Below are positions 7,459-25,318 of a stretch of DNA of 30,481 nucleotides, piece by piece. Source of the DNA: Piromyces finnis finn. Lineage: Eukaryota > Fungi > Neocallimastigomycota. Position 1 is the first letter of the stretch. Every line of letters starts with the position of its first letter. The notes beneath the pieces are model-generated. The model was not told the DNA's origin. It worked only from the letters and a program-made list of their open reading frames with translations, and did not search any database. The stretch is from contig MCFH01000133.1 in NCBI GenBank assembly GCA_002104945.1, forward strand, positions 1-30,481, given 5' to 3'. The position numbers were made by a program, and so were the translations under genes.

Positions 7459-9996
7459 TTTTATATTTATGTATAATATTTAAAATCTAGGATATATATT
7501 TTTATTATTTAAATTAATGTATATATTTTTAAATTTTATAATTAATTTTTATTATTACTATCAATCAATAATCTTCAGGTTAAAAATTAATAATAATAAT
7601 AAATATTTTGCTTAAATAATAAGTTTATCTTGAATTAGTTATAAATTATTTTATTTATTATCTATTATATTTGTTTTTTAATCGAATTATTTATTTAGTA
7701 TTATTTTAATTTTGGTTTTTATTAATTTATTTATTTTTTAGTTTGATTAAATTATTTAGTTTGTTAATTTTTTTGTTATATTAAATTAATTGATTATTTT
7801 GATTTATTGTTTTACTATATTTATATTATTTTAATAAATTTTAAAGTGTTGTTATTACTAGGTTGTTGTTTTTTATTTTTTGAATGTATTTTGTATTCTT
7901 GTTATAATTAAAGTTGATATATTTAATATTAAGTATTGGGATTGTTGCTATGTATAAACTTAAATTAAATATATGAACTTTTTATTAAATGTTATCCTTA
8001 TTAATAATAAATCATTATTTATTATAAATAATGTATTTTTTTTTTTTTTTTTTTCTGAATTGAAAAAAATATTAATAATAAAATTAATTAAAAGAGATTA
8101 GATTTATTTATAAAAAGAAAATGATTAAGAAATAAAAAAAAGATTAAATTACTTTATATATATAAAAAAAAAAATTTTTTTTGTGATATCTACAAAAATT
8201 TATTTAATAAAATATAAATCATCGTAGCCAAAATAAAAAAAAAAACTACCAAATTATTATTTATTTATTAATTAATTATATATCCATTATTATTTATGAT
8301 TTTTTTATGAAATTTAATTAGATTCTAATTATTTATTCATTATTTAATTATAGTTGGTGATATTTATGCTTTAGAATAAAAAATTTAGTAATTTTGTCCT
8401 ACATTTTATGAAATGTCAATATATATTGTACTATATATTACTTTATTGTTTATATATTGTGTATTGTATAATATAAATTATTATTAAATAAAGTTATTAC
8501 CAAAATTATAGGTAAAATTTTTTTATTTTTATTAAGAACTTTATTAATAATAAAAAATTTTGGCAATTATATAATAGTATTAATTTAAATTAAATATTTT
8601 TAATTTAAATTAATATATGACAATAGTATTATAAAATATAATAGAAAATATAATAAGTTATTATTCCGCTTATTCCACATGAAATAATAAATTAAATTTA
8701 TACAACAATCAATAGTGTTTATATATCAGAATTTGATTCAATATATTAATTTTATTTAAATGTAAAAAAAACTTTTAATCTATATTTAATAATCAATTAT
8801 TTTTATTATTCTATTTTAATAGGATTAAAGTTTTTATTCTATTAATTTTATTATTATTATTTAATAATATATGATATACATATATTAAATTATAAATATA
8901 TAAAGATTATACGTTACTCAAAAAAATTTATAAATTAATTAATTTATTATTAATTTATCTTATTATCCTTCTATTCAAAATATTAAGAAAATCACAGAAA
9001 TGAAAACAAAGAATTTAAAACTGTAAATATTAAAAAAAAAGTAATGGATGGTGCTATAATAAACTAACAATTGGAATATTAAAGAATATTATAATATAGA
9101 ATTACCGCCGGCAATTTTACCATAATAATTCTCTTATAACAAAATAATTCCCTAACCACAAAAAATAGAAAGAAAAATAAAAAAAACAAACCAAACCCAA
9201 ATATTGAAACATTGGTATAGTTTGGAACAATTCCCCTACTAAAATAAAGTAAAACATCATCTTTATTGAATAACTGAAACAGATTTCTACTTTATTTTTT
9301 TATATTTTCTATATTAAGTAATAATGAATAAAAGAGAAACAGGGAAGGTAACCTTATTCAAAAAAAAAAAAAAATTGTTGAATTCAAAAGAATAGAAAAT
9401 TCCAATGATATGAAATATATCAAAAATGTCAATTTAATAATGATTAAAAAAAAAAAAAAAATTAATAACAACAATTTGAATATAATTTGAATTATCATTT
9501 ACTAATAAGATTAACAAGACTTTTATGATATACACCAAATAAAATTAGGAAAAAAACTTTTTTATTTTTTTGAATTTAAAATAATTTATTCTTTAACAAT
9601 ATTCAATTCAAAATGTTTTCCATAATTACTGCACTTTTATATAAGAAATATGCATTATCATTGTGTTTCATTTTTTAACTCTATTCCCTTATTTTTATAC
9701 AAAAACTTTAAATTTTATGTTTAATAATAATTTTTAACATTAAACATAGTTCTATGTATGTCACGTTACTGTCATGATGTTTTATAAGAACTCCGATGAT
9801 AACTTGAAATTAAAAATTAAAATAATAATAATTAAAATTAGGATTATAAATGGACAACTTTACATTTTAACTTGTAGTTTTTATTAAAGTATTTATATAG
9901 TATTTATTTTTTAATTCATTATAAATAACGTAGATAAAAAATCATTTTACTTTTTGTAAGGAAAAAAAAAATATATTTATATATAAATAAAAATCC

Positions 9997-12900
9997 ATGA
10001 TTACATTTGTGAGTTATGCTTCCGTTGATCCTGTGGTCATTAGCGAAGAGTTGATAAATACAGCTATTAATGAACAGATTACACCTGAAATTGCTGAAAT
10101 TGCTAAAAAGGAAGGAATTGATCCTGAGGAAGTAAAAGCCATTCGATTGGATTATAAAAGTTAGTAATTAGATTTAATATTTTTTCTTTTAAAAAAAAAA
10201 AGGGAAATTTTTTAAATAATTATAATTTTCAAGTTAGGATAGGAAGAGAATAAAAGAGAACATTAAGAACATGTGTATATGCTTACTTTTTTTTATATTA
10301 TATAAATATATATATAACAGATATTTTAAAAATTAATAACTTATGGTCCCTCAAAAATTTAACAAAGTTACAATTAGATAATAATATTATAGAAAAGATA
10401 GAAAATATTAATTTTTTGGTAAATTTAACATGGCTTGGTATGAATAATAAAAAGATAATATATTAATAACTATATATAATACAATTGAAATTAAAAATAT
10501 AATAATAATAAAAATTATTTTTATTTTTTTCACATTAGATCTTTCATTTAATAATATTACGGTGATTGAAGGACTTAATGAACTAGTAAACCTTACAGAT
10601 TTATCATTATTCAATAATAGAATATCAAAAATTGAAAATATGGATGAACTAACAAAGTTGACAGTATTTTCTATAGGGAACAATAATTTAAGTAGTTTAG
10701 AAAATGTAAATATCTATAATACAAAATTGTATAAGCAATGGCAAATAATAATTTTAAAAAAAAAAAATATTTTTAAATTCTAAATATTTTGGAAATGTCA
10801 TTATTAAACATATTATATATATATATGATTTAATAAGATTCTATACCTAACTAGATTTGAAAATCTAAGAGTATTGAATGCTGCTGGAAATAAAATATGC
10901 AATGATAAAAATTATAAAGCATACATACTAGCAAATCTTAAAAATCTCAAATATTTAGATTATCGATTAATTAATCAAGAAGAAGTAAATAATAATATAT
11001 AAATATTTGACCTATTAAATGTTAAAATAGTAATATTAGTTTATTTATCAACTTGTATTTTATTTAAATATTTTATTTTAATTATATTATTCTTCAAAAA
11101 AAAAAAAAAAACAATCATATTTTATTTTAATCCGTGATGAATATTATAAAGGTTGAAAAAAGTAGAGCAATATATTTAGATGATTTAATTGCATTGGAAG
11201 AAGAAGAAAAAATTACTAAAAGTAAAAAAGAAAAACTAGAACAAAGGAGAAAATTAGAACAATTATTTGAAGTAATTTTTGTCTAATATAAAATATATAT
11301 GATACATTTAAAATAAAGGTGTTATAGCATTTATTATCCAAAAAAAAAAAAAAAAGAAAAGAAAAAATTGTATTTTTATATGGAACACTAAAATCAAAAA
11401 TAAATAATAAAATATTTTCCTATTGTAAGGAAATGTGGAAAATAGAAAAAATTTTTATACAATTTGATTATTAGTTAATACTTATATTCTATCAGACCAG
11501 TAATAATAATGAGGAATAAAAATTTGAATAAATAAACTAGTTATTTCAATGTTAATAATAATCCTTTATTAAAAAATTTATAATGAAATTTAACATGAAG
11601 GAATACAAATATAAAAGATTTTGGAATTTATTATACAATATATAAATAAATATAATATAAATAAAATGAATCGTCAAATAACCTTCTATTATCATACCAT
11701 AAATAATAATAATAAATATTTTTACATTATTATTAGATATATATATTAATAATATACAATTGATAAATATATAATTTTTATAAATTATACCAGGAAGCAC
11801 ATATAAAAAATATTGATATGTTATTTCAAGATATGTTTGAACAAGATCCAGATTTTCATAAATTAAATATTTTAGCACCAGAAAAAATACAAGATCTAAA
11901 TGAGGAATATCCTTTATATATATATATATATATAAAATGAATATATGAACATTTTATTAAATTAAATTAAAATAAATATATAGATCAATAATAATAATAT
12001 AATTATTATTACCCCAAATGAAAATAAAAAAAAATATATCTTTAACTTAAATTGCGTTTATCCTTTCATATAAACACTTATAGAGCCAAATTTGAAATTA
12101 TTATTATTGAAATGAAGGACTTTATTTTAAAGAAGCATTCAGAGGTTCAAGAAGAAAAAGAATTAATAACAAAAGCTATAGAAGATGCTAAAGCAGAAAC
12201 AGACAGTAAAGGAATAAAACTTGTTAATGATTTAGAACATAGGAAAAAAGCTGTATTATATCAATTAAATAATAATTTAATATATGAAACAATTATAATT
12301 AATTATTATTTCACTATTTGAAACTTATCATTTTATAATATTAAATTTATATTTCCTTTTTTTTTTCTCATAAAAAAAAAACAGTTTATAAGAACAGTAT
12401 CAAATATGAGAGATGTTAAAGAAATTGATGAAGCTGTGAAAGCAATGAAATTTGATGTAGATGAAACGTCTAATGAATTAATGGCATTAGAAATGACCAT
12501 AGTTGAACAATTTGAAGTAGGTGTCAAAAAATTAATACTCTAATAAACCTATACCTCCTTTTTTTCTACTTCCTTTTTAATTAAAAATATCAATTCAAAA
12601 TATGTATATAGCATTATTTTAATATCAACATCTACTTTTTTTCTAAAATAATATTATATATATATAGGAAATATTAAGAGAATACGAAAAAAATTTACAG
12701 GAATTATTTAATTCTATGTTAGAATGTGGACAAACAAAATATCCTTTTCATATTTTAATAAATAAATTATTATTTTATATATTAAAAAAAGGAAACAAGT
12801 ATTCCTATTAAAAATTAAGAAAACAAAATCAACGTATAATAATTAAAATAAAAGTTGTTAACTTTAACGACGATTTTTTTTTTTTTTTATAATTTTTTTA

Positions 12901-13674
12901 ATATTATTTTTAATAATTCCTAATATATACTATGGCTCGTATTCGTGAGTTAGAAAATAATTATTTTGAAAGATATACAGAATGTATTATGTCTGCTTAT
13001 GACCGTATACATAAAAGTGATATGGATTCAATAGAAAATGATGATCTTCGAGAGGTAATATTATGAAAAAAAAAAATTTTTTTTTTTATAATAAATGTTA
13101 AGTCAAATAATAGAGCATATGGACTTTAATATAGAATTCATTATGTTTCTATAAAAGCAAAAATGAATATACTTGATCTATACTTTATTTTAATATTTTC
13201 CCCTTTTTTTATACTGTTTGATGTTTTATTTCCATATTAGCTTATAAGTGATAAAGAAATTATATTAAATTCATTAAATGCAACTCATGATTTCCATCTA
13301 CTAAAATTCGATCAACAGGTATATAATTTTATTACTATTTTCATAATTACTATAGATATTGTTATCGTATAAATATTAAATAAACGATAAAAAAAAAAAA
13401 AGGAAATAAATAATAATATTTCCTTTTTTATAAAGTAAGCATAATCTAATCAGTTACTACTATTCTTCAAAATATTATTATATATATTTTACTGCCTTAA
13501 CGAAAATAACAGGAAGATGGTTTGTCTAGTGGTTGTAATAAAGAGTTAGAAGATGAAATACAAAGAACCCATAATGAAGAAACTCAAAGAAATAGAAAAA
13601 GAGTCATAGAGATTATTACCTATGTGGAAAGATTATACTATGAAATTGATCAAGCGGAAGACAATATATTTTGA
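9997..13674 (+). CDS. DRC3: Dynein regulatory complex subunit 3 (LRRC48), 12 exons: 9997-10159, 10321-10437, 10539-10705, 10838-10984, 11152-11271, 11794-11906, 12078-12252, 12385-12516, 12668-12738, 12931-13054, 13241-13318, 13513-13674
   Basis: Exons sum to 1569 nt (522 aa + stop) with no indels needed. LRRs NLTKLQLDNNIIEKIEN, DLSFNNITVIEGL, DLSLFNNRISKIEN; LKYLDYRLI; ELMALEMTIVEQFE; MARIRELEN; HDFHLLKFDQQED; RNRKRVIEI, all matching recalled DRC3 motifs. Confidence 0.95.
11907..12077 (+). other. U12-type (minor spliceosome) AT-AC intron, DRC3 intron 6, phase 2
   Basis: 5' end /ATATCCTTT, 3' end ...taaacAC/. Removal gives GAG GA|T TAT AGA GCC (E-D-Y-R-A-K-F) in frame. Read-through hits TGA. 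Branch-like TCTTTAAC at 12039-12046. Confidence 0.9.
12739..12930 (+). other. U12-type AT-AC intron, DRC3 intron 9, phase 2
   Basis: 5' end /ATATCCTTTT, 3' end ...ttcctaatatatAC/. Removal gives ACA AA|T ATG GCT CGT (T-N-M-A-R-I-R-E-L-E-N) in frame. Confidence 0.9.
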
Positions 13675-14948
13675 GATATAATTTTTACAACAAAATTTAT
13701 AATAATCTCAAAATCAAAAAATAGATATATCGCCTTATTCTTTAAATATCTTTTCATATCCTTTCTTTTTAACTTATTGACTGCAATACTCTGAAAAAGA
13801 TTCCTTTTCAGTACTCTTTCCATATTAATTTAATTTTTGTTGTTGGTGAAAATGAAAATGAACCGTTTTTTTTTTTTTTAATACAAATTTAGAAATAAAT
13901 ATAATTTATATTAAAAATTTCCAAATATGGTAAAAAAGATTTTTCTTAACTAAAATACATTATTTAATATAATGTATTACTTTGTATGTAATTAAAACAA
14001 TATCAAATAAAGTTAATTTATTACAATTTAAATTTATATTTTAATATAGTATTATTTATATATATTATATTTAATATATTTTTTAATATTTTATATAGAC
14101 AGCCATTGAAATGAATTGAATTTTTATATTTCTCATATATTAATCTAAATATTAATTAATAATAAAATTAATTTTTTTTATTTGTAAAATGTACATATAC
14201 ACAAAAAAGAAATATTAATAAATATTAAATTTAATACAATATTTTATCAATTTATTATTTATTATTGATAATATAAATTTTTATATTATTATTATAAATC
14301 AATTTTACTTTTTTTTTTTTTTTTTTTTTTTTTGAAAACAATTTAGTGTTTTAAAGTAGAGTTAAGATTAAAAAATTTTAAAAAAGAAAAAAAAAAGACA
14401 ATTATAACATTACTTATAGAAATAATAAAAGGTAAAACTATAAAAATGAATAAAAAAAAGAAAAGAAGGAAAAAAAAAAGGAAATTATTAATATAAATAA
14501 ATAATAAATTTATTATAAATAAATAAATATAAACAAAAATTGAAATGAAAATAAAAAGAAAAAAGAATTTTGAATAGAAATTGTTATAATCAAAATAATA
14601 AATAAATAAATTGATCTTTTTTTTTTCTTCATGTTAAACAAAGTGATAAAATAAAGCTTTTTAAATGAAAAAAAAAAAAAAGAGGGGAAATAAATATACT
14701 TTAAATAATTAATTTTGTAAATAAAAATTAAAATAAATATAGATGAATCGAATAACACTAACCTTAATTTATATTTTTATATATTATTATAATGGTTTCA
14801 ATTACAAATGTTTTATTTATATGTATATATAAATAAAAACAAATATATATACATACATATTTCTAAATGGATTTTATTTAATCACAAAAAAAAAAAAAAA
14901 AACGGAAAAAAAACGTATTATCAATGTTTTACTTTGTAAAGATACAAA

Positions 14949-23068: not shown

Positions 23069-25318
23069 TTATGATAATAACGTTGCAGTAGTATCTTCAT
23101 GACAATTTGGACATTTAAACTTTATTGGTTTATTTATTTGATTTAAATATTATAATTACGAACAGCTAAGGCTGATTTTAAACAAGTAGTATGATACTTG
23201 CATCCACAACTTGAATTAACTACAGATTTTGTTTCATTAATATTTCCATAGATTTTACCATTTTTGCCTTCGTAATCACAAAGATCAAAACGTATTAAGG
23301 AACAAGGATGATCAACTTTATTAAGTACGGTTTCCATTATATTTATACATTATTAAAAGTTTATTTAGCTTACTGCAATCGTTAGATTCCTTTATATAGG
23401 ATAAACTGTCAATGGAATATACAAATAAATTATAAATATTGTTTATACATATTGGATTGTTTTGGGTTAATCTTAAGTTCAGGATAAATTACTTCTAAAT
23501 CTTTCATGTATTTTTTTAATTCAAACTTTGCTTCATTAATATTGTTTTTAATAAACGATAATTGTTCATTTATTTATCAGCTTTTTTTGTTCGACCTTTA
23601 AGAATTCCTTGGAATTACAAGAAGAATGCTTCGCTTTTAATTCTTCTAATTCTTTTTGCTTTGATCCTTTTTCTTTGTTCAAGGTTGATATTATGTTTGC
23701 ATTTCCGTAACCTTGTTCATTATTTTTTTGATTTTCATCTTTCAATTCATCGTTGTTTTTTTCGGACTCTGTGAGTTCTTCTTGAACCTTTTCCAAATTA
23801 TGTTGTAATTTAGTAATTAATATTTGTTGAGCCTTTTTTGAATTGCTGAGCAATACAATTTCATTATCTTTTTTCTTTATTTTCCGGTTTATATTTATTT
23901 TATCGTTTTGAGCGGTTTTCAATTCATTCATTGTATTTTCAAATTCCTTTTGTATCATCAATAATAGATTGCTTTCTTTCATTTTCTCTTTTAAGAGATG
24001 CTATTTCTTCTTCCATCTTCTTTACCGTTTTATTAGTCTTCCTTTTCAATTATTTTATATTTTTAATATTATTTATACTTTCAATTTCTTTTACCTTATT
24101 ATTGACTATTTCAATTGATCTTTCTTTTCATTTTTTAGGATTTCTATTTCCTCATTCTTTTGTTGATAAATAAAATGTATTTTCAACTCGGTAAAAACCT
24201 TTTCTAAATCAGTTTGCTTTTTTTCTAATAATAATTGTTGCTTTTATTTTTTTCTTTAAGTATGTTAATTTCGCTTTTCTTTTCTTCTATATCCTTCATA
24301 TTCATTATCTTTTCTATTTTAGTTTTTTTAACTTCTTCTTGGGTATACTCTAATTCTTCTTCAGATTCCTTTATAAATAATGCTTGCTTTTATTTTTTCT
24401 TTTAGTAATTCTATTTCACATTCTTTTGCGCTTATTTCATCCATTATTCTTTCTTTTTCTCTAATAGCTGATTTTTTCTCTTTTAAAATTTCTTCAATTT
24501 CTTCTCTAGATTTTTTCCAATTCTTGTTTTGTTTCTCTATTATTATTGTTGACTTTCATTTTTTCTTTTAAGAGAAGAAAATTTCATTATTTTTTCTTCT
24601 ATACTACTTAATAACAATTTTTTTTCTTTATTAATTTTTTCAATTTCAGAATGGACTTGTTTTGCTTTTCTTCTGATATTTTTAATTGTAATAATTGTTT
24701 AATATTTTGGTCTTTAAGATATTCAATTTCATCTTCCTTTTCATATATATTCTTTTCAATTTTTCATTTTCTAATCAGCTTTATCCTTTCTTCTATTGCA
24801 ATCTTTATAGCGTTTTTGGTATTGGTTAATTCTTCTTGTGTATTATCATATGGACCATTTGATTTACCATTAATCTTTTCAATATCAATTTTAATAGGTT
24901 CATCATTTATATTAAGGTCTGAAATACTTATTTAGGTACATCTTTAACAATCGTTTTTATTTGATTTCTATAGTTTTTCTATGAATAATACATGTATTTA
25001 AAATACTTAATATCTTTTCTGTTTTTGCTATTGTATCTTTAGTTCCTTTATTAAATCTCGAATTTTAATTTTCTTTTTGTCTAACCTGGCTTTTTCAACT
25101 TCTTCTATTAACTTTTTTTGATTCTCATTTACTCCGACAGAATCATTTGGTATCTTTTCATTATTATCTACTTTTAAAATATTTTTATTTTCTGTATTTG
25201 TTTTTAATTATCTATTTTCATTATTAGTGTATTATTTTCAAAGAAACATATCAACATCACCTTTATAAGTTCTTTCTGACATTAATGATGTATAGCTATA
25301 AGACCTATCTCTAGCCAT
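23069..25318 (-). pseudogene. Coiled-coil protein with C-terminal RING-like zinc finger; many frameshifts (pseudogene or poor consensus)
   Basis: Starts MARDRSYSYTSLMSERTYK. K/E/N-rich heptad-like segments (ORF 23566-23982). C-terminus HPC...LC...SCGCKYHTTCLKSAL...KFKCPNCHED*. No obvious introns. Confidence 0.6.

Follow-up and report, generated by a model that had tools for sequence, protein, structure and literature searches.

The gene for dynein regulatory complex subunit 3 (DRC3) of the anaerobic gut fungus Piromyces finnis lies in the very AT-rich stretch of 30,481 nucleotides (nt) analysed here (contig MCFH01000133.1, called the window below; G+C about 18%), and its sixth exon raises the question of how a coding segment that ends without a usable GT donor is joined to the next one. 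We conclude with high confidence that positions 11907-12077 are intron 6 of P. finnis DRC3 and belong to the U12-type AT-AC class, as a preliminary description of the locus had proposed; the intron is ancestral and in phase 2 and, judged by its sequence, would be removed by the minor rather than the major spliceosome. The finding is correct but already known, because minor splicing has been published for P. finnis and the public gene model removes the intron. Two papers report minor introns and minor small nuclear RNAs (snRNAs) for P. finnis and Neocallimastix californiae (Larue & Roy 2023, PMC10639083) and give 129 minor introns for the latter species (Olthof et al. 2024, PMC11347168). These reports on the Neocallimastigomycota deal with the same group of organisms, name P. 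finnis and describe minor snRNAs along with the introns, and their searchable text contains neither DRC3 by name nor a remark on the distance between branch site and 3' splice site in these fungi. Intron 6 adds one well-documented case to the retention of the minor spliceosome in early-diverging fungi, in a gene already catalogued as a minor-intron gene in mammals. Within the finding, only the far-upstream branch signal stands out.

Boundaries of intron 6 and identity of the gene

The boundaries were established with the deposited P. finnis protein (P0008, 522 residues), which was retrieved by a word search with the protein of a relative. When all boundary pairs were tested against it, with a few codons joined around each junction, 11906/12078 was the only pair that gave ..LNED/YRAKF.. 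(the slash marks the junction here and below), so that the AC acceptor restores the frame as had been claimed. GT-AG boundaries were admitted at nine of the 11 DRC3 junctions, and AT-AC alone at 11907-12077 and at 12739-12930. If exon 6 is read through, it continues as ..LNEEYPLYIYIYIK and meets a TGA at 11938-11940. GT dinucleotides occur between 11794 and 12090 at 11820, 11835 and 12056 only, with none between 11835 and 12056, and the ones at 11820 and 11835 fall inside conserved coding sequence; the end of exon 6 indeed offers no usable GT donor, and the U12-type donor ATATCCTTT directly follows it, both as the preliminary description had stated. On the plus strand of the window ATATCCTT is found four times, against 1.3 expected from base composition, and two of the four copies stand exactly at DRC3 exon ends. 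Of the other two, the copy at 13756 falls in the 3' flank and the one at 24289 faces a minus-strand coding region; both are chance-like and were rejected as splice sites.

The AG at 12082-83 also keeps the frame, and removal of an AT-AG intron from 11907 to this AG would give ..LNEE/AKFE... The choice of 3' splice site in U12-type introns is described as error-prone (PMC3584512), and such a product may arise as a minor by-product. As the principal splicing event it is very improbable: it would delete Tyr-Arg from a YRAKF motif that is kept in all fungal relatives examined (Spizellomyces has YQAKF) and has animal counterparts in echidna (Y-K-A-K-F) and Nematostella (FQDKF), and D-Y-R is retained in the deposited protein and in the mRNAs of two relatives. 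AT-AG combinations are, moreover, disfavoured (PMC3584512), and among public models this AG is used solely by P0010 of Neocallimastix lanati, the GT-AG-only artefact described below.

Each of the 12 exons is an exact block of P0008 on the window, and the protein can be aligned over its full length with chytrid and animal DRC3. It is deposited at NCBI as 'outer arm dynein light chain 1 [Piromyces finnis]' and carries the UniRef name dynein regulatory complex subunit 3. Its layout is that of N-terminal leucine-rich repeats followed by a long coiled coil, the exons that encode the repeats matching Pfam LRR_4 and LRR_9. The exons were searched individually, full-length comparisons were made with database proteins, and the sequence-comparison scripts covered positions 9900-11600 and 11700-14000. 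Against PDB, the C-terminal half of a relative's protein (P0001) matched DRC3 chains from solved axoneme structures, namely those of human and Chlamydomonas and a second chain of 522 residues, with E values of 9e-36 to 6e-31 over about 290 residues. Exons 6 and 7 searched singly against PDB returned no DRC3, and exon 3 searched singly ranked PPP1R7 first because of its repeats. The repeats, the coiled coil and the full-length homology assign the gene to DRC3 (also LRRC48), in agreement with the identity first given to it. The preliminary description suggested that flagellar assembly may depend on the minor spliceosome; DRC3 is a subunit of the nexin-dynein regulatory complex that regulates motility and is not known to be needed for assembly.

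Three introns downstream in the same gene, intron 9 has the same terminal dinucleotides as intron 6 (Table 1). It too is kept in anaerobic-fungal relatives, with conserved termini and interiors that do not align, and by its sequence and position it is a second ancestral AT-AC intron of DRC3.

Table 1. Features of the P. finnis DRC3 locus, in positions of the window; P0008 is the deposited P. finnis protein.
Feature	Position	Strand	Remarks and basis
Intron 6, U12-type AT-AC, 171 nt	11907..12077	+	sole boundary pair reproducing P0008
5' splice site ATATCCTTT, U12-type consensus	11907..11915	+	sequence; unchanged in relatives
AC, 3' terminus of intron 6, context CAC/TTATAG	12076..12077	+	fit to P0008; L005/L012 pair
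Exon 6	11794..11906	+	ends ..CTA AAT GAG GA; intron phase 2 within the Asp276 codon
Exon 7	12078..12252	+	first base T completes GA/T = Asp, then YRAKFEIIIIEMKDF
TCTTTAAC, distal branch-site-like element	12039..12046	+	A12045 presumed to be the branch point, at a distance of 32 nt to the 3' splice site
ATCCTTTCAT, proximal candidate branch region (including TCCTTTCAT at 12061-12069)	12060..12069	+	about 9 nt from the 3' splice site
Intron 9, U12-type AT-AC, 192 nt, ATATCCTTTT...ATATAC	12739..12930	+	sole pair reproducing P0008 (..ECGQT N MARIRELE..)
CTTTAAC in intron 9	12862-12868	+	63 nt from the 3' end
TTCCTAAT in intron 9	12917-12924	+	sequence
DRC3 (dynein regulatory complex subunit 3) coding region	9997..13674	+	12 exons, 11 introns; mapped by P0008
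DRC3 exons 1-4	9997-10159, 10321-10437, 10539-10705, 10838-10984	+	exact P0008 blocks
DRC3 exons 5-8	11152-11271, 11794-11906, 12078-12252, 12385-12516	+	exact P0008 blocks
DRC3 exons 9-12	12668-12738, 12931-13054, 13241-13318, 13513-13671, then stop codon	+	exact P0008 blocks

Excision in relatives and age of the introns

The evidence for splicing is direct for a sister species and indirect for P. finnis itself. A profile search with exon 7 retrieved P0001, which is encoded by a 912-nt contig of the Joint Genome Institute (L005); this contig is one open frame from end to end and is therefore a spliced mRNA. It was compared with a genomic contig (L012) from a different sample, the exons of the two being 98-100% identical. 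The cDNA has the junctions ..gaatgaaga/ttatagagc.. and ..caaacaaa/tatggcgag.., and between these the genomic contig carries ATATCCTTTTTTTTT...AAAACAC and ATATCCTTTATATAT...ATATAC, respectively. Both ATATCCTTT...AC introns are excised exactly in this pair, with no alternative placement of the boundaries. A full-length mRNA contig of another lineage (L027, encoding P0009) reads ..NEDYRTKFE.. and ..GQTNMSRIRE.. across the same junctions. In P. finnis, the deposited model probably rests on transcripts, because an ab initio predictor would not choose AT-AC, and the fungus presumably splices intron 6 as its model says.

That the own-species evidence consists of a deposited gene model, with transcript support that is itself presumed, counts against our reading of the interval, and it is this knowledge from a model rather than from P. 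finnis transcripts that leaves any room for a pseudogene or an assembly artefact in place of an intron. We consider the likelihood of either to be negligible, since all 12 exons are intact and match a protein of 522 residues that aligns with DRC3 over its whole length, and the same structure is present in the independent assemblies of relatives. In addition, 26-33% of the words sampled from the gene stretch occur in four public sequencing runs of one organism, a fraction roughly equal to the exon share of that stretch (about 40%).

The preliminary description also held that standard gene predictors miss AT-AC introns, which proved true for N. lanati and did not hold for the public P. finnis model, in which intron 6 is spliced. 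The N. lanati DNA (L023, JACVTC010000804.1) carries both ATATCC...AC introns, and its model P0010 is wrong at each of them: at intron 6 it skips about 25 conserved residues (..MFEQDPDF...NEDYR), and at intron 9 the intron is read as protein (..IIFFFFFELYT..). P0010 is plainly an artefact of GT-AG-only prediction, and the case of DRC3 illustrates the harm that such predictors do to minor-intron genes.

Three anaerobic-fungal lineages were compared: P. finnis, a Neocallimastix-like lineage (L006-L011) and a second relative (L012-L017). Intron 6 measures 171, 275-328 and 238 nt in them, respectively, and only its ends, ATATCCTTT and AAACAC, are kept; the interiors of introns 6 and 9 gave no alignment across the lineages with MAFFT. 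Comparison of the intron position with that in chytrid and animal DRC3, a check that the preliminary description had suggested, showed that a chytrid contig (L018), Nematostella and echidna have an AT-AC intron in the codon and phase of intron 6, and ATATCCTTT is identical in the orthologous introns of the anaerobic fungi, the chytrid and both animals. The chytrid contig is closest to Borealophlyctis and Rhizophlyctis DRC3 (Rhizophlyctidales-like) and has at this position ATATCCTTTT...TCCTTAAC, followed by 19 nt to the AC; its called protein reads the intron through as coding, and no intron is present at its intron-9 position. Both introns are absent from Spizellomyces and from a Rhizophydiales-like contig (L019). 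Gonapodya prolifera has a short GTATGT...CAG intron at the position and phase of intron 9 (L021:2165-2222) and no intron at the intron-6 position; the former looks like a minor-to-major conversion.

In Nematostella (L020) the AT-AC introns lie in the codons before FQDKF and before MTQLRDLE, and their canonical branch elements stand 10 nt ahead of the 3' end; at the intron-6 position, TTCCTTAAC is separated by 10 nt from the AC. In echidna (L029) they lie in the codons before YKAKF and before MAQCRDLE, with an interval of 11-13 nt between the canonical branch elements and the 3' end; at the intron-6 position, about 11 nt separate ACCTTAAC from the AC. The codons occupied by introns 6 and 9 are identical in P. 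finnis, Nematostella and echidna, always in phase 2. For human and mouse DRC3 the MIDB database gives two minor introns each, with the 5' strings AGC/ATATCCTTT and CCT/ATATCCTTT (Olthof et al. 2019, PMC6717393 Tables S1, S2); the human CCT/ATATCCTTT is also the context in which intron 9 begins in echidna, the human and mouse positions being assigned here from 3-nt contexts. Because animals have them in the same codons and phase, both AT-AC introns of DRC3 predate the split between fungi and animals, and by position the fungal introns are orthologous to accepted U12 introns. For both introns, the codon, the phase and the 9-nt donor box have been preserved in P. finnis, Nematostella and echidna.

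Branch signal and 3' splice site

Both of the candidate branch sequences in the preliminary description, the distal TCTTTAAC and the proximal TCCTTTCAT, are present where it had placed them (Table 1). TCTTTAAC departs from the branch consensus TCCTTAAC by one C-to-U change, at which a G-U pair is still possible, and in a pairing made by hand it fits GAGUAAGGAU of the P. finnis U12 with a bulged A. Among interior 7- and 8-mers containing two or more G/C, CTTTAACT alone is common to the three orthologous copies of intron 6, the chance of finding such a motif in all three shuffled introns being 5e-5. The pattern C[CT]TT[AG]A[CT] has exactly one interior match in each of six introns (two loci, three lineages), at distances from the 3' end of 32, 127 and 77 nt in intron 6 and of 63, 41 and 86 nt in intron 9. 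Neither AC nor AG occurs in the 372 nt behind these motifs, as against 12.6 expected at the upstream rate (composition-preserving shuffle, P = 1e-4); these include the tract between TCTTTAAC and the 3' end of P. finnis intron 6. An AC/AG-free tract of this kind fits a distal branch site and the use of the first pyrimidine-AC as acceptor.

Several observations speak against a distal branch. U12 introns are described as having no polypyrimidine tract and an optimal spacing of 11-13 nt between branch site and 3' end (PMC3584512), and at 32 nt TCTTTAAC lies outside this optimum. The proximal motif is partly conserved, TCCTTTCAT of P. finnis corresponding to TCTTTCAA in Neocallimastix and to TCGTTAAAT in the second relative, and ATCCTTTCAT forms the strongest predicted U12 duplex of P. 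finnis intron 6 (-10.3 kcal/mol), in an RNAduplex scan in which AT-rich windows score well generally. ATCCTTTCAT is nevertheless degenerate, and its best predicted pairing with U12 has no bulged A. Weighing these signals, we lean towards A12045 within TCTTTAAC as the branch point rather than the degenerate proximal motif.

The distal element sets the fungal introns apart from the U12 introns of animal DRC3 (LRRC48), with which they share the gene, the two codon positions, phase 2, ATATCCTTT and the AC end. The animal branch elements (TTCCTTAAC, ACCTTAAC, TTCTTAAC and TTCCTTGAC) stand 10-13 nt from the 3' end, whereas the P. finnis element precedes it by 32 nt (intron 6) and 63 nt (intron 9), and those of its relatives precede it by 41-127 nt and are followed by T-rich tracts. 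It is conceivable, although we put the chance slightly below even, that the minor spliceosome of anaerobic gut fungi uses branch sites 30-130 nt upstream and takes the first pyrimidine-AC by a scanning-type rule. The U12-pairing element would then have kept its position as T-rich tracts grew longer behind it, and the 3' splice site would follow an AC/AG-free zone, unlike the tight 11-13 nt of animals and plants. The altered U6atac box GCCGAGAGA described below may belong to the same relaxation. If the arrangement is real and general, the strict spacing rule for U12 introns is not universal, which would be of interest to splicing specialists.

A CCTTAAC was also seen 12 nt before the AG of intron 11 (13319-13512, GTATAT...CAG). 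It is absent from the orthologous introns of relatives and was rejected as a signal; without such conservation it is probably due to chance.

Minor-spliceosome components and the route of removal

The snRNA searches covered the whole P. finnis genome (56.46 Mb in 232 contigs), with Rfam gathering scores as cut-offs. U12 (66.6 bits) and U6atac (52.1 bits) exceeded their thresholds. The 5' segment of the U4atac candidate, CGUCCUUAUCU, is the exact complement of AGAUAAGGACG in U6atac; this pairing extends over 11 bases without interruption, its departures from the consensus pair compensate each other, and the predicted duplex energy is -28.7 kcal/mol. The U11 candidate (L003:1496-1615, on contig C152 of the genome) is strongly conserved in its 3' half and has the core GUGCGGAAUCGAUAUCAAGAGAUUUCG...AAUUUUUGA, which is closely like that of human U11. 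Its 5' region is AAAGAAAAG and its 5' end reads AAAGAAAAGUUUUUU, where human U11 has AAAAAGGGC. By these matches all four minor snRNA genes are present in the genome, as would be expected of the active minor spliceosome that had been postulated. Matches to a ubiquitin-like Pfam family, presumably that of the U11/U12-25K protein, and to a CHHC zinc finger were also found in the genome.

Not all of these results favour removal by the minor spliceosome. The U11 and U4atac candidates fall just under their cut-offs (38.2 against 39 and 49.2 against 53 bits, respectively). The single U6atac gene found (L002:1501-1649; C112:211500-211648 in the genome) has GCCGAGAGA instead of the family consensus AAGGAGAGA in its 5'-splice-site-pairing box, and this altered box is predicted to pair weakly with ATATCCTTT (-2.5 against -6.9 kcal/mol); the introns keep the canonical ATATCCTTT box despite the change. 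The 5' end of U11 likewise pairs weakly with the 5' splice site, over about 5-6 nt only. Finally, PDCD7 (PF16021), which we assume can stand in for the U11-59K protein, was not found in a six-frame search that is insensitive for intron-rich genes and whose controls also gave none.

The poor pairing of both RNAs with the 5' box could be taken to mean that an AT-AC intron is removed here by the major (U2-type) spliceosome, the more so as a branch element so far from the 3' end and the T-rich tracts of the relatives resemble a U2-type architecture. U2-type AT-AC introns do exist (PMC1557818), and intron 6 resembles them in its terminal dinucleotides. It differs from them in having the TATCCTT box and a TCCTTAAC-like branch element. 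To our knowledge, U2-type AT-AC introns come without either. The full 9-nt U12 5' box is, in addition, invariant in the relatives, the chytrid, the cnidarian and the mammal while the interiors diverge completely, and the conserved interior element fits both the U12 branch consensus and, in pairing by hand, the U12 of P. finnis itself. Conversion to the major type is apparently exemplified by the GTATGT...CAG intron of Gonapodya at the intron-9 position, and intron 6 looks different. Removal of intron 6 by the major spliceosome is thus, in our estimation, highly improbable.

With removal by the minor spliceosome, the 5' box ATATCCTTT would be recognised by U11 and later by U6atac, and U12 would pair with the branch-site element. 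A lariat would then form, and ligation of exon 6 (..GA) to exon 7 (T TAT AGA..), which begins directly behind the CAC at 12075-12077, would yield ..LNEDYRAKF...

A metagenome scan for the U6atac of relatives yielded one contig with an identical 48-nt core comprising the U4atac-pairing region (L026:197-244). The contig is without the 5' and 3' parts of U6atac and must be fragmentary, chimeric or a pseudogene. The minus strand of C152 carries a match to a SNORD14-like C/D box small nucleolar RNA (L003:2162-2325) some 550 nt downstream from the U11 candidate, which at 52 bits stays below the gathering score of 64.

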